Assembly: GCA_943704425.1 (NCBI GenBank)
Contig: CALSCP010002677.1
Location: 28,884 to 76,580, forward strand
Reading direction: 5' to 3'
Length of the DNA: 47,697 bases
From: Ministeria vibrans ATCC 50519
Taxonomy: Eukaryota > Protista > Filasterea
A program made the position numbers and the translations under genes. Of this stretch, positions 1-16,600 are shown in pieces (the first letter of the stretch is position 1; every line of letters begins with the position of its first letter). The notes beneath the pieces are model-generated. The model saw only the letters and a list, made by a program, of their open reading frames with translations. It made no database searches and was not told where the DNA came from.

Positions 1-6
1 AGCAGC

Positions 7-135
7 CGCTTCGGATGGCTAGATTGTCTTGTACAATGAAGCTTTTGCCCTAGGACTTCCAAAAAAAAAAAAAGACTTCGGATGGCTAATTAAATTGTCT
101 TGTCAAAAACATTGAAGCTTTTGCCGGATTTCCAA
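7..135. repeat. Imperfect direct repeat of about 55-60 bp (2 copies)
   Basis: CTTCGGATGGCTA..ATTGTCTTGT..TGAAGCTTTTGCC..TTCCAAA occurs twice, separated by a poly-A run. Confidence 0.7.
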
Positions 136-1186
136 ACGAAACCCTGCCAACAATGCCGCCAGCTGGGAAGCTACTAATTATTATATCTGCTAACTTCCGG
201 TTATCTGATACGTGGTATATAATGCAGATTATTCTCGAAATGCCGTGATTTACCTGTTTTTACATGAAAATTGACAGGTCGGCATCAAAACCTATATATT
301 TCGCGCTATATCATATTTTTGAAGCACATATTATTGTAGTGTATTCGCCTTACAAAACGTTTTTTAAAACTCATTCAACAACACAGACTATATACTACGA
401 AAAATACACTAATATATTTCAGTGTCAACGGCTTGTTTTTCAGGTTTGAGAGTTAATTAATCAATATTACCTTCGAGCCCCTCTTTCTCTTTTTTTAGTT
501 TTAGGTCAATGCTGCAATGTATATACAGGCAGTGTTGTAAACTTGGCCTGTATCAATATTGGAGAGTCACCTAAAAGGTTTTTTTAAAAAAACTTTTTTT
601 GGAGGTCAATTAATGCATTGTCTGTTTAAACCATCCATCCAATCCAAAGCGGCTGCTTCATGAACCCTCGCAGAAACAATTGCCAAATGAAGCACCGGTG
701 TCCTATAGGGGAGGGAGGCTGCAAGATGTCTAGATAGGCAGTGTGTGCATGCAGATTGACTGTCGATTAATCACTGGTGCTCGAGCACAAAGACACTTTT
801 TTTCCTAGGATGAAAGTCTCACAAGCTCACAAGGACACGGATGTACGTGCGACGCGAACTCTTAAAAATATGTGAAAAGCGGACCGCAAAGAAGAAAATG
901 GACAGGTAGGCGACAAGGTGAGACGGTAAGGGATGAAGATGTCAACCGACTGTTAGGTTCTACGCGGTTTCAGCTGAAGAGGGGATCAAACTCTTGATTG
1001 GCAACTGCAGCACTACTACAGCATTTACTTATTAATGTTGTGTATAGCAAAACTCTGCCACAAAAATGTGTATAAATAATGAGAATAATAATAATATTAA
1101 TAATATAAATAACACTATCGCTCTCTAGAGGCACACCCCCCTTCTCTCACAGCCACTCCCTGATACCACCGCTTCCACGACAGAGA

Positions 1187-4100
1187 CTACACAAGACTGG
1201 ATTCCTTCAGGACCAGTGCCGCAACATCATCGTTCTCCAGTGCGCGCGCCCGCTCACTGACCTGGTTGGCCTCCTTGAACCGTCCCTGACACTCGAGTAC
1301 CTGTGAGATCTTCACCAGTGACTCAATCACCTACACACATAGATGGACGCGTCAAAAAAGGAACACGCGCCTGTACAGACCTAACGACAATAATAATTAT
1401 GGTATTATCAGTATAACATACCTTGGGATGTTTTGGACCAAAATGATGTTCATAGTTGAAAAGAGCCTTTTCGTAGGCGGAGAGTGAACCCACATAGTTG
1501 CCCTTGGTACGGAGCAAACTCGCCAACGACATATACACCTCGGCCAGCTGCGGGTGAGAGTCGCCATAATAGTCTTGACGCACATGCAGCGCACGCTGAT
1601 ACAGCGGTTCTAAGAAGAGAAAACACAATAAATACAATACCGTTGTCGTGAGTGCCATGCAATACCTGCTTCGTGGTACTGTCCATTGGACTCGTGAATG
1701 GCTGCCAGATTGATCAACGCCACAGCCACAGACGGGTCGGCCGCTCCCGAGTGCTTCTCGCAGATCATCAACGACCGTTGTGCACAGCTCATCGCCAGTC
1801 CAAACTTGCCTGCACACAAAGGGATTATTATCTTCTAAAAACACAAAAACCATAATAATCATATTGAATTATATACTTACTCTGTTTTTCATAAACCTCG
1901 GCAAGACTCGTCAGCACCATTGCCACATACGAATGATCCCCGCCAAACTTCTTCTCCCAAATCGACAGAGCCTAAATAAAACACCACACACAGACATTTC
2001 TTCAGCACAGTCACAGGCAACCAAGAACATGTTCAACACAAATGCGGAGACCATTTCAAACTTGTCCTGGGCTTTGGGATACTGCGCAAGGGCCTTGTAC
2101 ACCGTTGCGAGATCGTTGCACGACACAGCAAGTCGTCCGCTGTGCTTTCCCTGAGTTCCATGCACCTGCTGTCGAATCTACAACACATTCACACATTATG
2201 TGAGGTTTCAATGCGATTATAGAAGAAGAAAAAGCTAGAGTTTTTTGTGGGTTTACCTTGAGACATGATTCAAAGGGCGCGACTGCCTGTGACACGTGAC
2301 CTGCCGACCACAAGAAAGTTCCCACATCACTGTAGTGTGTCGCCATTTCCAACACTATATACGTCAACGAACAATACACTTCAGCACACAACACACACAC
2401 ATACACACACTCTCTCTCTCTCTCAATCACTTTGCTCCTCTCTCTATTTTTCAGAACATTTTGACTACGCGTACAAGAGGTATCGCGTCGTTCGGCGCGC
2501 TTGAGCACATCCATGTAGGTGCGAAGAATGGCCGAGGGCGACGCGTTGGTGGCGAGCCAGTAGCGCGAGAGGTCGTGTTTGGCATTTTTTACGAGGTAGC
2601 TAAACACATCGAGATTGGTGAGGCACCGCTGCAGACGCTTGAGCTCATCCATGGACTCAAGCAGCCACGGGAGCTCCTCGGCAACTCGACGAACACTCGT
2701 CTGAGGCGTACCGCGACGCAGCTCCTCCTCGAAAAACACTGCCACCGTATTGTAGGCGGCCGTCATCTCCTTCTCGGGGGGCGCCACGTCCGACGAGGGC
2801 GCCGTCACGCCGGCGCCATGAAAGAAATGCCGTCGGACCGCTGACTGCAGTTGCGAGTGAGCCAGCGTGATCACATCACCGCGCTGCATGATAAAAGGCT
2901 CGATGGAAAAGAAGATGGGAAGCCAGGTGGTCTGGTCGATGTTCGCAATGGCCATCAGCTCGGGCTCGCTCAGGCCGTAGTGAGCCACCGCGAGACTTCT
3001 CAAAATCACAGCCAGCGCTTGCGGCTCGCTCTGCGACCACGAACCCGAGCCCGACAGACCAGCGGTGGCGGCGGACGACGAGGAAGCAGACGACGAGGAC
3101 GACGTCAGTGCCTTGAGCGACAGCCGACGAAGACCCCGTCGCAACGCCGACGAGGGCGGGGCACTCGACTCGCCCACACTATCGCTGCTTGTCGAACGAC
3201 CCACGGCCGCAATAGACGTGGTGAGCGACTCGGCCGAGTGCTCGGTGTTGCCTCCGGCGGCATCGTGTGCCATGGACGCTCGACGCTTGGCCAGACCCGT
3301 GTTGGGAAAGTAGAGGGAGCGACCGACACGCTCGAGCATCAGAATGAAGAGATCCTCGTTCGACGTGGTCGCCAGGGTCTTGTTGAGGTGCTCGTCAAGC
3401 GTGTCGCGGTCCGTGTAACAGGCAATCTCGTTGAGAAGAATACTCAAAAAGAGAGGGTTGCCCGTGCGCTCGTGACCCACCACTCGCTCTACCTGGTTCA
3501 GCGTCAACCTACGACCATGCACTCGCGACGACGACGCAATCACCTCGCGACACTCCGACTCGGTCAGTTTGCTCACGTGCAGCGTCTTCCACGAGCGATC
3601 GCGCACAAGCACATTGCGAATGTCGCCAGGTTGCGTCGCAACCACAAGCTGAATGCGTGCCGCCGCACCGGAACCGCACCATTTGACAACGTCCGGCAGC
3701 CACTCGAGGGTGTGCGCACCATCCACATTCTCAAGCTGATCCAAGCCATCGAGAACAACGACCACACGTGAGAGCGTGGGCGCCGACGCAACGTGGTGCA
3801 AGCTCTCGGAGAACATCAGCATGAGCTTTTCCGTGTCAACCGGCAACGCCTCGCGACTGCCGTGTCCCAGAATGCAGCGCAGGCGTCGCGTCAGTCGTCG
3901 CATCAAGTTCAAGTGGCTTCGGCTGTGCGGTGCACTCCCCACAAAATGGTAGAGCACCTCAATGTCCGACGACTCGGCCGTGAGCTCTAGCTCGCGTGTC
4001 ACCCAGTTGGCCAAAAGCGATGACTTCCCAATGCCTGCCGGACCAAGAACCACGAGACCGCCATGACTTGCCTCGATCGCTCCCTGAAGATTGTCCAGTC

Positions 4101-7100
4101 GGTGTGTTCGTCCCACATAGCCAATGGAGCGAGCGCACACAAACGACTCGTGCGACACCGATTCACTATCTAGAGGCGACGCCACTGCAGCCGGTGTGGC
4201 CGTCGCGGTGGTGCTCGCCGCTGCTGTAGGTGTGGTCGTGTTCGCTCCTGCTTCGCCACCCGGCAGCGTCGAAGCGGTGGACACGTCGGAGCGTTCGCGC
4301 GAAGCCATCGCGTGGTTCGCCGGCGACATCTCACTCGAAGAGGGTTCAATGTCGCGCGTGACAAGCATGTCGCGAATGACCGCCTCGACCTCGGACGCAA
4401 GCAGACGCATGCCCGACATGGGGTCGGTGTAGCCATCGTAGACGGCGGCACACGATGGATGCGAGACGAGCACGCGGTGCTTGAGGTCGGCAAGGCGCGA
4501 CGCTGACTCGATGCCCTCCACGTCGTACTTGGCCGCCTCGCGTCGGTCGCCACGCTTCATGAGACGCTCGTACTCGCGACGGTCAAAGTCGGGGTCGCGA
4601 AACATAAAAATGGCAGGTCGCTGGCCGGGACGCCGCAAGTGACCGCTGAGAAACTCTACTTCGGTGAGCGAACAGTTGCGCAACCCGTTCGCCCATGCAA
4701 ACTGCTCGTCGCTGCAGAGCTCGTCAAAGTTGCTCTGCAGCCAGTCATTTGCAAAGCCATGGGGCCCATAGCGCGCGCCCAAGACACCCACAAAAATGTC
4801 GCTGCGACGCACATCCGACAGACTTGTGTGCAGCGCCGTGATGGAGCTCGCGGCACCACCTCGCTCGACGTTCCAGCGCAAATCCGTAAACACAAGCTGG
4901 ACGCCGTTGCCGACGGACTCGCACAGACGACGCAGCGCAGGCACGTGTTCCCCCACAAAGTGATCCCGTTCACGCTCGAGACCCTCGACAGGAGCACTGA
5001 GGTAGATGCGAATGACGCGACGTACACGCTGCTGCCGCACAAGGGGTACGCGAACGGGCGTGGCACGGCGAGGCACCGACGTGAGAAGAAGAACGGCGGG
5101 TGCGTTGCGATAGAGATGCGACGTGTTCTGATGCAACACATTGGCTTTTTGCTGGCTCGTCGGCGTGCGCGTCCTGTGCAGCGCGGCGGCCGTACCGGCG
5201 GCCGATGACGACGGTGACCCGGCGGCCCCCGTGTTGGTTTGCGAGTGTCGCACACTCTCGTCAATGTGAAATGCAATGAGTTCAGGCAGCGTGGAAAACG
5301 AGCGTGTGACCAGGCGGTAGCCACCGTTGCCGTTGCGTAGCACATTGACATGTCGAACACGCCCCGGGGCCTTTACCGAGAGCACAAAGGCGTCGTTGTT
5401 GTCGGTGCCAGTCGAGCGCAAAAGGAAAGCACCCACATCGTGCTTGAGCAGCATATCAGTCGCCTGCACCAGCGACAGTCGACCGTGGTACCACACTTGC
5501 GAGTCGTACGGCTGGTCCACAAAGACTCCCGCGTCCGCAACGGGATCCGCCGAGTGCGCCACGCAATGCGCGGCGCCATTGGGACTGCCAAAAAAGTCAT
5601 CGTCGTGTCGTGTGCTTGGTGTCACATCCGACTCCTGTGAAATCTCCCCCACCACGTCGCTAAGCATCTTAAGGGAGGTCGGTCGTGCCGTGGGCGGCGT
5701 CTGCCTCATCGACACCGCCTTTTTGGGCGGCAAGTGGCGCACCGACTCGCCAAAGTTCTTCATGACTTCCGTCAAGAAGTCCTCGGCGCCCGAGTCGAGC
5801 GGCGATGACAGAGACAACGGTTCCACGGCATTAGCCTCAGCAGCGCCAAAGGATCGCTCAACAATCTGGGCCTGTTCTTGCGCCGTCGGCGTCACCGAGA
5901 GACCGGCCGATCCCAGCGGAGCGCGTGCTGCTGTCGGTGGCGGACTCCCACCGGGTGCCGCTTTGTTCGAGCCTGCGAGCCGCGCAGCGTAGGTTCTCAC
6001 CGTACCCTTAGAGGAGCGCCCACCGGACGACGACGAAGATGTCAACGAGAGCGTGGCGGTGGGAACGATAGGAGGCGGGGAGCCACCGCCGCTGACGACA
6101 GCAATCGCTGCCGCGCCACTGGGACCCGACTGCGACACGCGTTTAAGTGGGCGCTTAGGCGACACAATGGGCGGGGGGATACTGACTGCAGCCAAATCAA
6201 TGTCGGTGAAGGCCGACTCGAGACGGTCGAGACCGTCAAATGGGCGTTTCGAGCTTGGCGATGATGCGCCAGCAGCTGACCTCTTGCTGCTTGGCGAGAC
6301 GACCGTGGTTGATTGTAGCTGCTGCTGCGACGTTGGGGGCGTTGTTGTAGCTGATGATGGTGGTAGTGGTAACGACAACGATGGCGGTGGTGACGGGAGC
6401 GGCAACGACTCAGACGAGACCATTTCCATGGAAGGCTGAGCCGACGCGGGTGAGCGAACTTCAATCTCGGACAGAGCGCTCTCTTTGCGACTGACTGGTG
6501 CCTTGGAGGTCGAGGCACTCGTGCCATCGTTGACTTTCGCGGTGTTACAGCCGGGCACCGTCGACAGCGGAGCTGGTTTCGAGGGCGATGGAGTCGTTTT
6601 GTCGGGCCGATCGTTCGTCGACGATTTGCGACGGAAAAGCTTGTGGCGTCCACTGCTAGCAGCGCCGGCCTTTGGTTCCTCAACGGAGGCGTCAAGCGTC
6701 ACGCTGTCGCACGGAACGAGGCCCTGAGCGCCAGTCGACGACGTCCCAACAAACCTGCAAGGGCGGCAAACAAAAGAAACGCTTCAGCTCCATTCTGCTC
6801 TGCTAATATTTCAATGGCAGTGCAATGAGGCCCGCACGGGCCATCAAGGGGGGATAGAGTCACGCAGTGGCGCTGGGAAGGCGCACAAAGCGCGATATCG
6901 TGGAGAACACGCCAAATTTTTCAAACACTTTTTTATATACAGCAAAAACCGCTTTTGCCAGCGGGGCCGTTAGGACTTACCACTTGCGAGTGGTGAGCTT
7001 GTCAATGTCGGAGACTCGAAGGGAAAGCTTGTCGCCGCGTCGAATCGAGAGCTCTTCGGGGGACTTGGCGGCGTACTCCTGGATGACGTGTACGGTCGTT

Positions 7101-7120
7101 CGTTCGCCGGTCGCCGCCAT
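1187..7120 (-). CDS. SH3-SH2-DUF4062-NACHT(STAND NTPase)-TPR protein (NPHP3/TTC41/TEP1-like core), multi-exon
   Basis: Exon 1 (7120-6981) gives MAATGERTTVHVIQEYAAKSPEELSIRRGDKLSL...RKW. It splices GTAAGT..TTGCAG in frame to 6754 (FVGTSSTGAQGLVPCDSV), completing an SH3. SH2 at about 5493-5265 (WYHG...GAFLLRS...FVLSV...FSTLPELIAFH). DUF4062-like IRIYLS...ERDHFV...LRRLC...DLRWNV. Walker A GPAGIGKS, Walker B VVVVLDGLDQL. C-terminal TPR exons (e.g. AEPLYQRALHVRQDYYGDSHPQLAEVY). Stop TAG at 1187-1189. Confidence 0.85.
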
Positions 7121-7299
7121 CGTCAGCCACAGCGCAGGGGAGGGGCGGTTGGGTCACTCTTCACCAACGATCACGTGACTCAAGGCACACCGGGAGAAGA
7201 GGGCGTGCGCGAAGAGGAAAATAAATTATGATTGAATTTTGGTGCCGCAAAAATTCAATGGGCAATAAAGAACCAATCGTCCAATACACGCACAATACA

Positions 7300-7580
7300 C
7301 GAGTCACAAATACCGCATAACAAGCTAAACAGCATGACATTAGCCATTAAGTCATTGACTGTCTGAAGACTCTATTCTAGACTCTGAACTGATATCTTAT
7401 GTCAGTTATCAGTTCTGTCTAATGGACATTGAACAGAGGAGGACATTTCAAATAATTATGACAATATAGGATAATTAATATGAGTCACAAGTACCGTAAA
7501 GAAAGTTAAACAACATGATATAAACTGATGTTTTATGTCAGTTTTAAGTTTTGTCTACTCACCAATGGACATTGAACACA
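7300..7580. repeat. Degenerate direct repeat (2 copies)
   Basis: GAGTCACAA.TACCG...AACTGAT.T.TTATGTCAGTT...AATGGACATTGAACA occurs twice. Confidence 0.65.
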
Positions 7581-7721
7581 ATTGAAACCATGACGATTAA
7601 TATGAGATAATATGAATAATACCGTAAAAAAAACAACCAATTATTAGTGGTATTAACGAATAACGTCTCATGTTGAATGGGCATTGGCCATTAAGCACAA
7701 CTAAAAGACTGGCATGATTGA

Positions 7722-7802
7722 GAGACCGGCACGATCGAGGGACCGACACAATCGAGTACCGGCACGATCGAGGGACCGGCACCCTCGAGGGACCGGGACG
7801 AT
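7722..7802. repeat. Short tandem repeat of about 17 bp (GACCGGCACGATCGAGG-like, about 4 copies)
   Basis: Directly visible in the sequence. Confidence 0.7.
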
Positions 7803-7920
7803 CTTTTACATTGGACAATTACAGAAAGATGACCAAAGTATATCAACGACTAATGTGATAGCATGAAGGCAACATCATTGGGAAGCAATCCTTATAAATC
7901 ATTTTGATGTGTCATCATGA

Positions 7921-8842
7921 TTTTCCCGCCAAATACACTTACTAGAAAGAGCGCATTTGCGTGTTTTGTTTTCTGAACCGGGCCGAAGAGTGTGCATTAT
8001 CTCAAAACTGCTATCAAGCACCCACTCTGCGAATTCCTTCAGCACACTCACCATTTGTCCGGTTCCTCTCCTTTTTTTTCCTTATTTTTGTATGATTTTT
8101 TTGTATGATTATTTATTTCGAGAGAGAGAGAGAAGCACTTCGCGCGCGAAAAAGAATCATATACTTGCCAGATTGGCGTAAATGACTACTGTAAAAGCTA
8201 CCCCAAACACACAGTCACGTGCAAATATCGGCATAAAATCCGCGCGATTCAACTGCGCTACTTTTTGAAAAAAGAGCACATTTGGATGATCTGTAGAAGA
8301 TCTGTGTTTTGAACTGGGCCGAAGAGTGTGCGTTAGCTTGTTTTACACGTTATGACGCGCAGCCGTTGTGCCATTTTTTTTTGCACTCTCACCATTTGTC
8401 GAGTTCCTCCGAATGTTGTTTTTCCTTTGCTTTTAAATTTTTTTATATATACTGCAGCCCGCATCACCCCCTGCTGCTGATGGCAAGAGGAAATCTAGTT
8501 ACGACTCTGTTAAAATTGTTCTATTGGTGTGTTGGGACGTAACTTGATAATTAAAATTGTTCTATTGGTGTGTTGGGACAGGCTTCCAACTCAAGGTAGT
8601 TGGCTTGATTTGACAGCTGCACGAACATTCAAAACAATGTAAGGGAAATGTAAGTTAAGCGTCGATTGACAAAGAGCTTCTAAAAAGCAGAGGCCCGTCG
8701 ACTGATGGTCGGATGACTGACCCGACAAGTAACAAATGCATATATTGAATATTCCGAGCTGCGAGGGAGAGGGACATAATCGTTCACCTCTTGACCCTTT
8801 AGTGAAAGTTCCATACTTTTTCCGAACTTTTTCCCGCCAAAT
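7921..8842. promoter_or_regulatory. Candidate E2F-type elements in the divergent intergenic region upstream of DNM1L and the SH3-SH2-NACHT gene
   Basis: An identical 14-mer TTTTCCCGCCAAAT occurs at 7921-7934 and 8829-8842, with TTCGCGCGCGAAAA at 8139-8152. These match or closely resemble the TTTSSCGC consensus. Confidence 0.4.
8510..8579. repeat. Perfect 29-bp direct repeat
   Basis: TTAAAATTGTTCTATTGGTGTGTTGGGAC at 8510-8538 and 8551-8579. Confidence 0.9.
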
Positions 8843-9226
8843 CGTCTTTGATCAGTATTATTAATTTGCTGCAGAGTAATTTTGCGCTCTCACAAATTTC
8901 TCAGGTACAGCCATTTCTTTCTTTTGAGGACGTAATGCTCGATTTTATAATCACGTCTTCAACAACGCTTCAAAAGAAAGTGAAAGTCGACAAACACCCG
9001 CAGTTACCCAGCTCATTCACCCCCCCCCCCTCCGCAAGTCCCACTCCGGAAAATGGTAAGCCAAGTAGCCACCCACCACTTACTCCTTTCACCGCTCATC
9101 CACAGCGTGAAAATCCATCTCCCTTCCCCACCATGCATGATCATTATCGCCCTAGTCAAATATCAAAAATAATTCAAATTTTTTTCAGTCATTTTTATTT
9201 TTTAGTCATTTTAGAAAATAACCAGA

Positions 9227-11854
9227 ATGGACCGCCTCATTCCATTGATCAACAAGCTTCAAGATGTGTTTCACACCGTTGGCGCAGAGGCGCTTCAGCT
9301 GCCTCAAATCGTCGTGGTCGGAAGTCAGTCGAGTGGCAAATCAAGCGTTCTCGAGTCGCTTGTTGGCCGCGATTTCCTTCCTCGCGGCACCGGCATCGTC
9401 ACCAGACGCCCCTTGATCCTCCAACTTCTCCACACTCCTTCCACTTCACATGGTACGGTGTCGTTTTTTTTTCTTGTGCTTTGCGTCGTCCGACTCGCCT
9501 CCTCTCGCCGTCCTCTCGCCGCCCTCTCCTCGCCACCCCCCCGGCCAATGCCCTTCCACCCGCGCACCCCTCGTGCCATCCTCCCATCTCGCTTCCTCCT
9601 TCGTCTTCGTCTTGTTTCAAAAAAATCATTAACATCCCTTCAAGTGTGAAATTTTTACGTCCTCTGCACGTTCCGCTCGGTCTACGCTCCCAAGCCCCTC
9701 TATTTATTCACAAAGGCACTTGGGCCTATGCTCAGAGCGCTTGCGCGTCCCAATCTCGTCGCCCATCCACCGCGACGGGTCGACAAAAAACCACCCTCTT
9801 CTCGACTCTTCGTCATCTTGCCAAAAAACACCATACACACTCTTTCAACCACCCCCGCGCACCCCGTCCGGCCTTGATATTCCACCAACACTGCTGTCCA
9901 CCGACGGAGGCGGTGCGCATGAGTCTCCAGCACAACAATAGGCGACCAATATGTTTCGAGGAAATCAACTCGATCAGTTTGACTCAACCACTTTCTTCTT
10001 CTTCTTCTTCAACCATTTTCTTGCTGTGGTAGACCACGACTTCTCCGAGTGGGGCCAGTTTCTTCACGATCCCGACAAGCTCTATGTCAAGTTTGAAGAG
10101 ATCCGCGATGAAATTGAGCGGGTACGCAAAATTGTGAGATGAACACACTTGTCAACTAAGCACTGTACTCGACAGGAAACGGATCGCACAAGTAGCGAAA
10201 AGGCCATTTCTCCGATGGCCATCAATCTGAAGATCTTTTCGCCCCACGTCCTCAACCTCACTCTTGTTGATTTACCAGGTGTCACCAAGGTAGGAAATCA
10301 GTTTCATGTCAATCAGTAGAGACCGAAAAAGCAAAAAAAAATAGGGAGCAATCAGCATTAGTTCGCGGCGATTGTGGCGATATTTATGCTTCCCTTGTTT
10401 TGCGTTATTTTGAACGTCAGCGCAATGCCCATACTTACACAAAATGTCACACCCAAAACACCGGTGTTTGAAAAAGTTGTGCACAACATTGCTGACATAA
10501 TAATTATTATGTATACTCCTATGAATAAGACGCCAACTGTTAACTGTCAGTCAAATTGATCAAAAATTGATCATTGTAATAAAATAATTAGTATTATTAG
10601 TATTATTATTATTGTTATTGTTGTTGTTGTCTTTTGTACAGCACTCTATTCAATTCTTTTTTGTATTAGTAATATTATTATTCTGATCTTTTTTTCTTTT
10701 TTTATCCTTGGTAGGTGCCTGTTGGAAATCAGCCCGATGACATTGAGCAGATCGTGCTTGACCTCATCATGAAGTACATTTCAAACCCGCACTCGATCAT
10801 TCTGGCGGTGACGCCAGCCAACACAGACGTGAGCACGAGCGACGCCCTCCAGATTGCACGACGAGTTGACCCGCATGGCAACCGTACCATTGGCGTGTGC
10901 ACCAAATTGGATCTAATGGACGCCGGTACGGATGCCTCGGACGTGCTCTCTGGTCGCGTCGTTCCCGTCAAGCTGGGCTTTATTGGCGTCGTCAACCGCA
11001 GCCAGGCTGACATCCAACAGTGCCGTCCCATCGCCGAGGCGCTTCAGGCCGAACAGGACTTCTTTGCTCGTCACCCGATGTACGCCTCCATTGCCGATCA
11101 CTGTGGTACCCCATACCTTGCGCGTACCCTCAACAAGGTTAGATATTGAAAAAGAATACAATTCAGAAAATAATAAGAGAGCTGCACATTAATAATAATA
11201 ATAATAATAATAACGTCTTATTATTAATAATAATAATAATAATTATTATTATTATTTTATTACATTTTTAGGTACTTTTGCGTCACATTCGCGAATCGCT
11301 GCCGGATCTTCGTATTCGTCTGAGCCATGCCGTCAGCCAAGCGCAAGCTCAGTTTGCACAGTACGGCGATCCCGTTCTCGAGCGACTCGACAAGGTACGC
11401 ACGCGTCTAGGACCCAGCCAAAGGAAGGGCCCAAGTGACAGATCTTTTTTCCTACAGGGTGCTCTCTTGCTCTCCATCATCACTCGCTTCTCCACGAGCT
11501 ACTGCAATGCCATCGAGGGAACCACTCGCGAAATTCAAACTCAACAACTGTACACCCATTCGTTGCTTGTGCGTGGTACTTTTCATCGATTCATTCATGT
11601 TTCGTCTTGATTTGTAGGAGCGGTGGGGCGCGAATGTGTTTTATTTTCCACGAGACCTTTGGTCGCACTCTGCAAAACATGGATCCGCTTGACGGTCTTA
11701 CAGTCAACGACATTCGCACAGCCATTAGAAACGCAACAGTATACACACGAAACAATTATACCATTATCTCACTCACACTCACCCACACTCACACCCCCAC
11801 AAAGAATCTCTTGTCTTATACTAATATAAAATAATTCATAATAATAATAAAATA

Positions 11855-11885
<31 letters not shown>

Positions 11886-12717
11886 TTTTTTACTTTATTG
11901 TAGGGGACTCGACTGTCGTTGTTTGTGCCTGAAGTGGCTTTTGAGTTGCTTGTGAAGCGACAAATCCGACGACTGCTCGAGCCATCATTGCGCTGCGTTG
12001 AGTTGGTCTTCGACGAGCTGTTACGCATCATTGCACAGTCAGAGACACAAGAAGTCACGCGCTTCGAGACGCTGCGCGAAACCATCAACGAGACTGTCAC
12101 CAACATGCTGCGCGCACGACTGCCCTACACCAACAGCATGATTGAGAACCTCATTGAGATCGAACTGGCTTACATCAACACAAATCATCCCGACTTTACA
12201 GGAGGCAGTCGCATCGGCGCACGCATGGCCGAGCGTGCTATGGAATACGATCGCAGAGAAACCGTACGCATTCGAACTACTCTTTGAACGAGGGGTTAAT
12301 GAATTATTATTTGCGTGTAGGAGGGCGAGTCGTCTTTTAGTGTAACCACGACCCCCCATGTATCGGCAGCAGCCGCTGCGTCCGCTGTGAATTCGACCAA
12401 TGGTGCATCGGCAGGTGCCCCTGGCCCCTCTGTCACGACTGCCACCATGTCGTCCCAGTCTCTCTACACGTCCACCGCTGCCTCATCCTCCCTCAGCGAC
12501 ACCGCCCAGCAACAGCTCCACAATGGCGCCTGGGGGCTTTCCAATCTATTCTTCGGCAGGAACAAACAGCGTGTTCAACCAGCGACGAATGTCTCGTCCA
12601 CCTCCAACGCCAACCCAAGCTCAAACTTCACCAGTGCGTCTCCCTCAGACGACAAAAACGACGTACTTCTCTCATTGCTCGTTATCCTTCCATTGTCCTT
12701 CTCTTAACCACTTCTTT

Positions 12718-12748
<31 letters not shown>

Positions 12749-13277
12749 GTTCTCTAGGATGATGTGTCTGTTTCGAGCGATGTCACATATGTATGAGTAT
12801 TTAATTTTAATAATAATAGTACTCATATTATAATCTCGCGTGCTCACTCTTTATTGCAGATGATCCAAGCGGCGTCGAAGCAGATGAATCCGCGCGAATA
12901 CATGGAAACGGAGCTCATTAGTAGGATCAGCGCTTGCTTTGTGCCTATTGTTTTTTGCAGATCCTCTTACTCCCTTCTTCTTCTTCTTCTTCTTCTTAGA
13001 GCAACTGATTGTGTCGTACTTTAAGATTGTGCGGAAGAACATCCAAGACGCAGTGCCCAAGGCCATTATGCACTTTCTGGTCAACTGGATCCGTGAGAAT
13101 GTCCAGCAACGTCTTGTTGTCGAGTTGTACTCGGAGAAGCGCTTCAACGCGCTGCTCGAAGAGTCCCCAGTTGTTGCGGCACGGCGCACCGCCACGTCCC
13201 GGCTGCTCGAGGCCCTGCAGCGCGCACAAGCCGTTCTCGGCGAGGTCAAAGGCGAAATGCACGCGGAGCGTCTCTGA
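9227..13277 (+). CDS. DNM1L: Dynamin-related protein 1 (mitochondrial/peroxisomal fission GTPase), multi-exon
   Basis: The N-terminus [67 protein letters not shown] closely resembles Drp1. Also present: [28 protein letters not shown], middle domain [11 protein letters not shown], and [27 protein letters not shown]. No PH or PRD domain. Confidence 0.95.
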
Positions 13278-13628
13278 TGCCCCTCACTCGTGTACTACTG
13301 AGACATTAAAAATCACCACACACGCATTTTTATCATGATTGTTATTTCTGTTGTCGTCGCTATTGAATACTAATAATATTAATTGTTTTTATTCATGATA
13401 CAGTCATCAGATCCACAACAAAAGCACAAGTGCAATTGCAATGGTACGCCATACTCTAGTGGGGGAGGGGGGGAGNNNNNNNNNGGGGGGGTGGAGCTTG
13501 GGGCCAATAAGAAGAACCTAATTAGGGCTAAGAAGAAGACCACCCATAGCAGTAACGAATTTTTCACGTTCGAGCAATGGAACCAATCAAAGTCAGGCGT
13601 TCGTTGCGTTTATTTGTTTTTCATATTG

Positions 13629-16600
13629 CTACAGAGCATCGCACATTCCGCGAAGAACGGGATCGGGAATGCGCTGGAGAAGACGGTCGGGAAGACTGTC
13701 AGCCAGGGCACGGTGAGCCTTATTGCTGGTGAGAGAAATAGGGGCGAGACGCGTCACAATGAGCAGTGCGCGACGCAGGAGAGCACAGCGGCCCTTGGCA
13801 ACGTACGGGCCCGTCTGTGAGCGACTAAGTACCAGTCCGGTCGATCGCAAACAAAGAGTGTCGAGACGCGACAGCGCACGCAGACAGCAGGGCGTCAGGT
13901 GTGATACCATCATTGTGTGAACGGCGGCCGAGCCGTCCTCCACCAGCGCCAGTGCCGCTTCGAGAGCCAGTTCGCTTGTCAGCATTGTGTCCAGTAGCGC
14001 ATTCGCAGGCTCCTCGTCAAAGAACCGACGTGACCAGCTGTCGGCAGAGACAGGAAAAAGCGCGTCCACGTCGCGTTCGTCGCGCGGACCCTCAATCAGT
14101 GCAACCAGGGCCGAGGGACTGCGCTCGGCGACCATGCGTACGCAAAGACGCAGACAACGCGACGGTTCCAGCGACTCCACTTGCATGGCCATGGCTGCGG
14201 CAACAGCACAACAGGCTGGCTCGCGCACTTCGGGGTCCTCCTCTTGCACGAGCCACACGAGCGACGACCACAGTTGTCCCGTGTGGTCGGGCGACAAGCC
14301 GTGTCGTCCACCCACAGTGTTGCCACCAAACCGTCGTGCAAATGCAAGAATCGCTCGAGCAGCAACCACGCGCGACTCGAGCGGTGCGGAGGGTACTGCA
14401 AGCGATGCAACCAACGCAATCCATTTGGGGGTTAGATGTGGGCCGCGCACAATACCGCCGTACAAGAGAAGCGCCGCCGCCGCTGGCAGTAATTCAATCT
14501 CTTCCCTCCAACGCTCGGCTACCGCCACCAACAGCGCCTCGTCGTTACCCAGATTGTCCGCACGCAATGACTCAGGCGCCACTTCCAAGAGGATCTCGCG
14601 TTCGCTCAGACGCAAGTCAGGGTCATCGGTAGGTACACATCGAGCACGAAGAGTTCCTGACAACACGCATCGCAGCGTACGCTGCCCCGTGGGAGTTGTC
14701 CATGCCTGTGGCACAAGAATAAGACGACGCAGAGCAGATGCAACTACGCGAGCGTCCACCGCCTCCGCCACAAGCTGCTCACAACACTCGAGCATCTCTG
14801 CAGTGCTTGCAGCACACTCAAGACAACACAATGCGGCCTGCTCGCGCAGCATAGAGGCACCCGCAACGCGATCCACACCAGAGATGCCTATCTGCTGGTG
14901 CACCACGTCCGACGAGGCAGCCACCAATGCCTGGCGCAGTGGTTCCGCATCATCGCAGGTGCCACCGCTCACAGCCACACGCCACATCGCCTGACCTGCC
15001 TCGAGCGCCAATGCGCGAGTCAATGAACACGGATTGCGATCACAAGCAAAGCGTTCCACGGTCGTCGTCAAGACACGCACAAGTTGGGGTGTGCAGTGAG
15101 CGTAGTCCGAGCGCTGGTGGGCAACCGCTCGCACCAAGGCAAGACGTCCGTGCAGGGCATTCTGATGAGCCAAAGACGCCTCGCTCAGCGACTGAAGCAG
15201 CTCGGAAGTCACTTGGTCGCGCGAGAGAATGTTGCAGAGCGCACGTGCGGCCAGAATACGGGCATGGAGCTGACGTGACTCGATACACTGAGCACGCACA
15301 AGACCAATAAGGCGGTTAAAATCGATTTGGACAGCGGGGGCGACAAGAGGCGCGAGGCGCACAAGAACTGTGAGTGCAGCCACCGCATCGGCGCGCTCCC
15401 CGTCGCCTGTGGTACGCTCAAGTGTCGTTTCAAGAAGCAGAAGCAACGAGCGATGGCGCGCAAAAAAATCGTTTGCTGCAACAGAGGGTGTTTCACGAGC
15501 GCCGCACGCGCGCGTCATCGCCGCACCATACAGGTAGGTGCAGGCATTGCGAACGGCAAAGACAGGCGAGGCAAAGCCGCGGATGGCGAGTTCAAGAGCG
15601 CGCCCAGCCGAATCGATGGTGATGCCCACAAGACGTGTGTCTCGAAAGACACGCAGTGCCGAGAACATGGCACGCACTTGCACCAGATCGGCATTGTGCA
15701 CATCATCGGAGTGCGCCACGGGCTCAGACGCCACGTCGAGAAGGCGGTTAAGTGAGGCACGCACCAGGGGCTGTGTTCCGGCGCGAGGCTCGCTTGCCAG
15801 ACATCCAAGTAGCATGAGGGGTAGTCCTGCGCCACGGCGTGTCACTGATACCTTGGCAAGACTCACCTGCTCGTCGATGGCCGCGTTCACCCACAACGCA
15901 GGAAACGACGCGAGCTGCTTGTCTCGATGAAATACGGTGCAAATGGTCTCCCACGACACGGCAAGGCGTTCCACAAGGCCCTTGTGCCGGGATCGACTCA
16001 CCGTTGTACCCACAAGCTGCGCCACAGCGGCCGCTTCGTCCACCGAGATGAGCCGACTCTCGCCAATCGGGACATGCTGCAGCACAGCGGCCAGCAGTGC
16101 ACCTGCTTCGGTCACAGTGGTCCACAGCACATTGTGCACCTGCTGTTGCTCGTCGTTCAGTGCTCCGTCCAGCTGTGAGTCATTCTCCGTCTCGGACTCA
16201 GTGGCCATCAACTAAAACAGAGGCAAGAAAACAGACAACGTGGCGTTGGTTGAGCACTCGTAAAAAAAAAAAACACACACACACGCACAGTTGTTTTTCT
16301 TCTTTGCGTAACTTACCTCCGAGGCGACACGATAAATGTCAGCAAACGAGGGCACAACACGATCGCGCACCGTTGGATGATGCGTCATAAGATGGTCCAC
16401 CGAGGTGATGACGGCCTCGCAGTGATGGAGAATGCGTACAATGGTGTCGCGCCAGGCTGCGTGTGACTCTGCGCTGCTACTGCTGCTCTTAACAATGGTG
16501 TCGCGCGAGTCTTCGACACATCGGCGCAGGCACATGAGCGGACCGTGGCCGCGGAAGAGTGCTCGTGCACCCGATTCGGCGGTGGAAAAGGTGCCTGCAA

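Follow-up and report, generated by a model that had tools for sequence, protein, structure and literature searches.

The 47,697-nt window analysed here, part of contig CALSCP010002677.1 from the filasterean Ministeria vibrans ATCC 50519, carries on its minus strand (7120–1187) a gene whose predicted product combines an SH3 domain, a long linker, an SH2 domain, a DUF4062 (NIR) domain, a NACHT NTPase and a TPR array. This SH3-SH2-NIR-NACHT-TPR arrangement was seen in no other protein among the matches listed in our searches, and so far consists of one gene in one genome. Judged by homology, the product is a lineage-specific member of the known NIR-NACHT-TPR family of STAND NTPases with an added SH3 domain, linker and SH2 domain. 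We favour, with modest confidence, the view that these additions make it a STAND switch acting at tyrosine-phosphorylated partners. The domain order had been proposed in an earlier reading of the DNA made from its letters (the sequence-only reading), and Pfam searches and inspection of motifs agree with it, the match to the split SH3 domain being below the Pfam cut-off.

Gene structure and domain content

The coding sequence of 5,211 nt (1,736 codons and a stop) is distributed over eight exons, and all seven introns have GT-AG boundaries when read from the genomic DNA. The limits given earlier for the gene hold at both ends: an ATG stands at 7120, in a Kozak-like context (A at −3, G at +4) and preceded, 12 codons before it, by a stop in the same frame, and a TAG ends at 1187, with an AGTAAA ∼160 nt further downstream. 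No N occurs within positions 1–9300. The list of open reading frames (ORFs) represents the gene by a 1,548-aa open frame at 6702–2056 (−), and the genome scan by 1,575 aa free of stops; by three-frame translation and inspection of the sequence, the 3′ tail of this long frame runs through an intron.

The element that holds the chain together is exon 2, in which the SH2 and DUF4062 domains lie 78 codons apart in the same open frame. Because the SH2 and NACHT domains are both contained in this single uninterrupted exon they cannot be separate genes, in keeping with the earlier claim of a single gene, and separate transcripts would need an internal promoter or polyadenylation site in an exon that is uniformly coding-like. 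Its G+C content is 56–67% in all 150-nt windows, without the AT-rich dips that mark the introns and flanking non-coding DNA, which here have 25–51%; exon values range from 48 to 62%, and those of introns 2–7 from 25 to 42%.

The junction between exons 1 and 2, proposed earlier at 6981/6754, is likewise upheld. A GTAAGT donor and a CAG acceptor are joined in such a way that a split Trp codon, TG/G, preserves the frame across intron 1, and the SH3 domain is interrupted inside that codon. Read back into intron 1, the exon-2 frame meets a stop 11 codons before the acceptor, with no ATG between, so that the C-terminal piece of the SH3 domain (the first ∼20 residues of exon 2) is translatable only through the splice. 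On the evidence of the sequence, we conclude that a single intact protein-coding gene is present.

Evidence for the SH3 domain was gathered exon by exon, not on the joined sequence. The protein starts with MAAT, after which the SH3 domain begins. Exon 1 alone matches Pfam SH3_1/SH3_9 (PF00018/PF14604) at positions 1–24 with an E-value of 0.002, below the cut-off. A second profile was derived from 20 complete SH3 domains of the host genome; here exon 1 scores 19.0 bits at positions 3–28, whereas none of 200 shuffles exceeds 2.5. The C-terminal half gives no match when searched alone against Pfam, and the start of exon 2 matches the own-genome profile weakly, at positions 39–49 (3.5 bits; 1 in 200 shuffles does at least as well). 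The two pieces are nevertheless collinear, the Trp falls on the exon junction, and two SH3 domains of the same genome share the pattern W-[FY]-V-G ... G-x-x-P-G-N-Y. In the aromatic positions, VIQEY retains the second Tyr of the ALYDY motif and the first is replaced; the Trp and Pro are retained, and the SNY Tyr is replaced (CDSV). The split domain is very likely an SH3 domain, of a divergent kind. Introns also interrupt many other SH3 domains of the genome, near profile positions 24–28; the split in this gene is at a different site, the Trp codon at about position 31–32.

The linker that follows was described earlier as ∼400 aa, Pro/Ser-rich and bearing PxxP motifs, and this description stands. 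Its 398 residues comprise 18% Ser, 13% Pro and 12% Ala, and it is probably disordered. The five PxxP motifs are no enrichment over the ∼6.7 expected from a Pro content of 13%, and there is one class II SH3 motif, PKRPLK. The suggestion that the SH3 domain binds its own linker in autoinhibition was rejected as unsupported, given that PxxP is no commoner than composition predicts, that the class II motif is single, and that two binding aromatics of the SH3 domain are replaced.

The SH2 domain is matched by Pfam over its full length (1–77; E 5.1e-13, 49.4 bits against a cut-off of 21), and 181 SH2 chains in the PDB match it at E≤0.001, the best being the N-terminal SH2 domain (N-SH2) of SHP2 and that of Grb2. 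In the alignment with SHP2 N-SH2, the Arg of FLLRS corresponds with R32 (FLARPS) and the His of VRHVNV, at βD4, with H53 (VTHIKI). The phosphotyrosine (pTyr)-binding Arg is thus intact, as had been noted; the pTyr pocket as a whole appears so, and pTyr binding is predicted. Recruitment to phosphorylated receptor tails could follow from such a pocket. The host genome (29.7 Mb in 2,860 contigs, as scanned here) contains at least 100 strong matches to the tyrosine-kinase catalytic profile, many of them in open frames of 1,500–4,700 aa, and because it is so rich in these domains, ligands for the SH2 domain should exist in the cell. It also has ∼25–30 SH2 domains, more than 100 SH3 matches and Src-like SH3-SH2-kinase loci, a repertoire in line with a filasterean-like or other unicellular holozoan (for published counts, see PMC4342544). 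The nearest SH2 paralogue, in an SH3-SH3-SH3-SH2 (Nck-like) gene, is 37% identical, and recent duplication is thereby ruled out as the origin of the domain. Between the SH2 and NIR domains there is a single Tyr (window positions 5110–5112; Tyr 548 of the exon-2 translation), in the pYxN (Grb2-type) context HLYRNAP, which could possibly serve as a docking or intramolecular site.

DUF4062 was reported in 2026 to be a TIR-like NAD+ hydrolase (NADase) domain and renamed NIR (bioRxiv 10.64898/2026.05.01.722283; 10.64898/2026.09.04.749371). The profile scores 23.9 bits on the ORF, where the cut-off is 24.7, and 28.9 bits, above that cut-off, in the six-frame genome scan; the domain is also similar to chain 11gz_A, the crystallised TIR-like domain of TEP1, with an E-value of 3.6e-7 and an alignment in which the TExE and RYG motifs coincide. 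With the offset of the TEP1 numbering anchored on R908 and R976, SLTEVE aligns with SVTEME of TEP1, its second Glu being the equivalent of E1008, and the RYG Arg is the equivalent of R976. The S-x-T-E-x-E and RYG motifs are both conserved to at least 80% in an alignment with 49 relatives. In human TEP1 the NIR domain is the vault NADase, whose activity requires E1008, is lowered by the R908A and R976A substitutions, and increases at higher protein concentration (bioRxiv 10.64898/2026.05.01.722283). Eukaryotic NIR proteins are mostly NLR-like, with the NIR domain N-terminal (bioRxiv 10.64898/2026.09.04.749371); prevalence figures are 96% for choanoflagellates and 88% for animals, and the domain is the effector in several bacterial anti-phage systems (2026 NIR preprints). 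In the present protein the effector position is likely held by an enzyme, not by adaptor domains alone, and a NADase output is predicted.

The NTPase is recognised by the nSTAND1 (33.7 bits, cut-off 27.1) and NPHP3_N (28.2 bits, cut-off 24.8) models, the NACHT profile itself scoring 23.3 bits, below its cut-off of 26.7. Intact Walker A and B motifs, claimed in the sequence-only reading, are present (Table 1). TPR_NPHP3 matches the end of exon 2 at 1.6e-14, and exons 3–8, searched singly, give matches to TPR_12, TPR_10 and TPR_NPHP3 that continue the TPR_NPHP3 profile. No Pfam match to LRR, CARD, PYD or Death was found on the ORF or the exons, and the TPRs and the NIR domain occupy the positions of such domains. 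The earlier term 'NLR-like' is apt in the loose sense of a STAND protein, but with no LRRs the protein falls outside the NLRs as they are defined in metazoans.

Table 1. Features of the gene, in window coordinates
Feature	Position	Strand	Description
Exon 1	6981..7120	−	46 codons + 2 nt of Trp codon; start and SH3 N-terminal half; GC 0.61
Intron 1	6755..6980	−	226 nt; GTAAGT donor at 6980; pyrimidine tract and CAG acceptor ending 6755; GC 0.51
Exon 2	2475..6754	−	4,280-nt uninterrupted open exon; SH3 C-terminal half, linker, SH2, NIR/DUF4062, NACHT, first TPRs
Introns 2–7		−	GT-AG; 120, 79, 80, 71, 56 and 91 nt
Exons 3–8	2354-2257, 2177-2052, 1971-1881, 1809-1666, 1609-1422, 1330-1187	−	
Stop codon TAG	1187..1189	−	Read from sequence
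SH3 C-terminal half	6694..6753	−	W/FVG ... GLVPCDSV; collinear weak profile match
Linker	5494..6687	−	398 aa, Ser/Pro/Ala-rich; composition; no Pfam domain
SH2 domain	5266..5493	−	Pfam PF00017; FLLRS βB5 Arg at 5416-5418
DUF4062/NIR, TIR-like NADase domain	4519..5019	−	Pfam DUF4062 and NPHP3 domain; S-L-T-E-V-E Glu (TEP1 E1008 equivalent) at 4654-4656
NACHT/STAND NTPase	3472..4122	−	Pfam nSTAND1, NPHP3_N, AAA_16, NACHT
Walker A	4021-4044	−	GPAGIGKS; read from translation
Walker B	3739-3765	−	VVVVLDGLD; read from translation
TPR region	1190..2739	−	NPHP3/KLC-type, ∼8 repeats; end of exon 2 and exons 3–8

Upstream of the gene, window positions 7121–9226 form an AT-rich region of ∼2.1 kb that separates it from a divergently transcribed Drp1-like gene with a first-exon ORF beginning at 9227; a bidirectional promoter region is probably common to both genes.

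Relatives, origin and novelty

The placement of the DUF4062-NACHT-repeat core with proteins of the NPHP3/TEP1/NWD1 type, made in the sequence-only reading, is confirmed by the Pfam models, by the relatives and by the two preprints (bioRxiv 10.64898/2026.05.01.722283; 10.64898/2026.09.04.749371). In a library of 5.8 billion clusters, and among 1.84 billion representatives at 50% identity, the nearest proteins are of the DUF4062-NACHT-TPR type and are 32–41% identical over the NIR-NACHT region. Those with names are called 'TPR repeat-containing protein DDB_G0287407-like' or 'Nephrocystin-3' and come from hemichordates, molluscs, echinoderms and a nemertean; further relatives are Salpingoeca rosetta PTSG_01838, of the WD40 type, and a Balamuthia protein.

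Within the host genome, a six-frame profile scan gives five DUF4062 loci, and an SH2 domain lies nearby only at the one described here; a further NPHP3-like locus, C837, has no SH2 domain nearby either. The locus C1788 is a plain NIR-NACHT-TPR gene, 36–42% identical to the studied gene, and C1993 is a weaker DUF4062 locus. A maximum-likelihood tree was computed by a quick method from 48 NIR-NACHT regions; it excludes rows longer than 650 residues and contains no human NPHP3. In it, our protein clusters with C1788 and C1993 (SH-aLRT 100), separately from the clades of invertebrates and amoebozoans. Both of these paralogues are without SH2 and SH3 domains. The simplest reading is that an NIR-NACHT-TPR gene was duplicated within the lineage and that one copy then gained SH3 and SH2 domains long ago. 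Because the core is 38% identical to that of C1788 and the SH2 domain 37% identical to its nearest paralogue, the fusion would be old and maintained, not a recent accident.

The possibility that the gene is an NPHP3 orthologue was considered and rejected: in the tree, which is without human NPHP3, the protein groups with paralogues of its own genome, and its MAAT start offers no N-terminal Gly for myristoylation. The hallmark of the NPHP3 N-terminus is a coiled coil preceded by a myristoylated Gly2.

The libraries searched may not include records of this genome or of its close kin, and the absence from them of the protein itself or of an orthologue is accordingly not informative. An exhaustive HMMER search of the 1.84 billion representatives used as its query the SH2 domain, the linker behind it and the NIR domain (471 aa, stopping before NACHT), on the reasoning that a protein with both SH2 and NIR domains would out-score single-domain matches. 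None of the best 150 of 1,612 matches combines SH2 and DUF4062. Nearly all of these 150 match in a single stretch, in the NIR part only, and usually starting no more than ∼25 residues from the N-terminus; the matches to the SH2 part are, among those listed and checked with Pfam, multi-SH2 proteins. Proteins with SH2 and NACHT but no DUF4062 lie outside the 471-aa query, and were not specifically sought. Where listed relatives have long N-terminal extensions, these contain no Pfam domain, Ank repeats, or BRCT and TIG domains.

Other searches agree. A word-based search of the 5.8 billion clusters with the SH2-through-TPR sequence listed no protein with both SH2 and DUF4062, the ESM Atlas gave clusters with DUF4062, NACHT and TIR but none joining SH2 to DUF4062, and a scan of JGI metagenomes for the SH2-NIR stretch found nothing. 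In a full-text literature search we found no description of SH2 joined with NACHT, DUF4062 or nephrocystin-3, and neither NACHT nor TPR is mentioned together with SH2 by Suga et al. 2014 (PMC4342544). A known conserved family with this architecture, which according to the sequence-only reading would refute it, is not what the HMMER, cluster and ESM Atlas searches point to among the matches listed.

Several other loci of the genome were noted. At C837:6394-9195 (−), beside the NPHP3-type TPR gene, a 934-aa ORF fuses a dTDP-sugar 3,5-epimerase, an RmlD reductase and a DegT/DnrJ aminotransferase, and looks like a bacterial deoxysugar pathway. The HSP90 gene at C1392:42500-50500 is broken by a long run of N, an assembly gap. 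An 18S gene was located as well. The HSP70 encoded by a single exon on C2175 shows 100% identity to a protein on ENA metagenome contig ERZ23497041 scaffold_8778 (sample SAMN09406010), and no more than 73% to any named protein in the library.

A proposed switch at phosphotyrosine sites and its alternatives

In the mechanism that we favour, the TPR array would keep the NACHT NTPase off until a ligand binds; nucleotide-dependent oligomerisation would then gather the NIR domains, whose proximity would turn on NAD+ hydrolysis, as it does in TEP1 and bacterial NIR systems (2026 NIR preprints). The SH2 domain and the divergent SH3 domain, flexibly tethered, would bring the switch to receptors or scaffolds phosphorylated on tyrosine, and any partners bound by the two domains would become clustered upon oligomerisation. 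Binding of pTyr, oligomerisation, NADase activity and the order of these events are all predicted here by analogy. The narrower proposal, in which the SH2 domain recruits a STAND oligomer to a phosphorylated receptor or scaffold and the NIR domain hydrolyses NAD+ there, locally or cell-wide, makes a pTyr-addressed NADase switch; taken as a whole we regard it as rather improbable.

Several observations weigh against the view of a switch at phosphorylated partners. Taken alone, the C-terminal piece of the SH3 domain gives a weak match, and two aromatics that SH3 domains usually employ in ligand binding are missing. The SH2 domain is without the αA2 Arg, a residue that SHP2 N-SH2 likewise lacks. 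The tree was made by a quick method, with a row from this window that has an unusual composition and with a long branch for C1993, and no orthologue was found in any other species in libraries that possibly lack close kin. The gene model was built from genomic DNA. In the NIR domain, R908 of TEP1 is replaced by Glu and R954 by Thr, and by comparison with the silent human proteins discussed next the NIR domains of this clade may be inactive, or may need activation.

It is on this last point that the alternative of a scaffold turns, according to which the NIR domain is catalytically silent and the protein is an NPHP3-like scaffold of the cytoskeletal or ciliary type, its SH2 and SH3 domains serving as docking sites on a platform without NAD+ chemistry. 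Full-length human NPHP3, NWD1 and NWD2 show no NADase activity in vitro (bioRxiv 10.64898/2026.05.01.722283), the R908 column is Gly throughout the closest, invertebrate clade, and it is the NPHP3-specific models that give the best Pfam matches to the core. The catalytic Glu, the adjacent Glu and the RYG Arg are nevertheless kept in our protein and in at least 80% of the 49 relatives, and retention of the Glu pair and the RYG Arg across relatives argues for selection on the active site. Moreover, inactivity of a resting full-length STAND protein in vitro is to be expected if activation needs oligomerisation. We consider the scaffold unlikely. A different division of labour, which we hold to be improbable, makes the SH2 and SH3 domains the sensor or gate: a pTyr ligand, or an internal site such as YRNA, would release or impose autoinhibition, and kinase activity would trigger oligomerisation. 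It would account for the intact pTyr pocket and for HLYRNAP, the pYxN-type site whose Tyr is the only one between SH2 and NIR, and it has a parallel in the control of NACHT sensors in trans by animal tyrosine kinases, described for NLRP3/BTK and NLRP12/HCK (PMC8480672, PMC12130821). The sensor of a STAND protein is, however, normally C-terminal, where the present protein has an apparently complete TPR array, and neither the 398-aa nor the 78-aa linker, with PxxP not enriched, suggests a compact clamp.

An artefact of the gene model would dissolve the question altogether. The SH3/SH2 and NIR-NACHT-TPR parts could be separate products, through an internal promoter, an alternative start or mis-assembly, or exon 1 could be part of a different transcript. 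The first in-frame ATG of exon 2 lies ∼110 codons in, so that an isoform without the SH3 domain is conceivable, and the assembly is fragmented, with gaps in other genes. Set against this are the continuity between the SH2 and NIR domains (one frame, no stop, no N, no AT-rich dip), the contrast in G+C content between exon 2 and its surroundings, and the C-terminal half of the SH3 domain, which lacks a start of its own and has a strong acceptor in frame with exon 1. An artefact is in our judgement very improbable, and we return to the switch acting at phosphorylated partners as the preferred reading.

The interest of the gene lies in what it says about inputs. We know of no upstream signal to the eukaryotic NIR/DUF4062-NACHT proteins (NPHP3, NWD1/2, TTC41, TEP1), widespread as these are, and a natural fusion to SH2 and SH3 domains points to tyrosine-kinase signalling as a candidate upstream pathway. 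The gene adds to a picture in which unicellular holozoans moved pTyr-reader domains onto very diverse machinery, and to one in which the NIR-STAND core repeatedly gains N-terminal targeting modules, BRCT and Ank elsewhere. Were the pTyr-addressed NADase true, a unicellular relative of animals would have a hard-wired connection from tyrosine kinases to an NLR/TIR-type (immune or death) output, one that would predate the indirect kinase-NLR cross-talk of vertebrates. Should the gene turn out to be restricted to a single lineage and little expressed, it would be no more than an example of domain promiscuity.

Comparison with known systems

The NPHP3/DDB_G0287407-like family has the same order of core domains and is recognised by the same Pfam models (NPHP3, NPHP3_N, TPR_NPHP3, DUF4062 and NACHT). 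Most of these relatives have no more than ∼25 residues before the NIR domain, whereas here it is preceded by ∼620 residues that contain the SH3 domain, the linker and the SH2 domain. A few relatives carry some other N-terminal interaction module on the same core, without SH2 or SH3: the proteins P0075, P0079 and P0072 have the architectures BRCT-TIG-DUF4062-NACHT-TPR or Ank-DUF4062-NACHT-LRR. BRCT domains are phosphopeptide readers, and in the relatives with BRCT phospho-Ser/Thr would be read in place of the pTyr expected here.

TEP1 resembles the present protein in having a homologous NIR domain that adjoins the NACHT domain (PDB 11gz) and in the equivalents of E1008 and R976. It differs in its TROVE and WD40 domains and in having neither SH2 nor SH3, and its R908 and R954 are not conserved here. 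A TEP1-like gene is present in the same genome, at C2623 ∼5071-14000 (+), with a frame of ∼2,991 aa that contains TROVE, DUF5920, DUF4062 and NACHT, which makes it probable that the organism possesses vaults equipped with a NIR NADase.

The bacterial systems Avs-NIR, Swarozyc, Vulcan, Vesta and Evangelion likewise place an N-terminal NIR domain before a STAND NTPase and C-terminal sensor repeats. These proteins sense phage proteins and deplete NAD+ after oligomerisation, and have no pTyr-reader modules; their role is defence, and an immune role for the present protein is no more than conceivable. Tyrosine phosphorylation and a NACHT sensor are also functionally connected in the cases of NLRP3 with BTK and NLRP12 with HCK (PMC8480672, PMC12130821), but there the connection operates in trans, on NLRs that have PYD and LRR domains and no SH2, whereas here the reader is within the chain and is combined with NIR and TPR domains.

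With Nck, Grb2 and SHP2 N-SH2 the protein shares a canonical SH2 domain, and with the Nck/Grb2 type a very likely SH3 domain upstream of it. The SH3 and SH2 domains are here ∼400 residues apart, however, and not adjacent, and the SH3 domain is divergent; and in contrast to these adaptors the protein continues as an NTPase switch and not with more adaptor domains.

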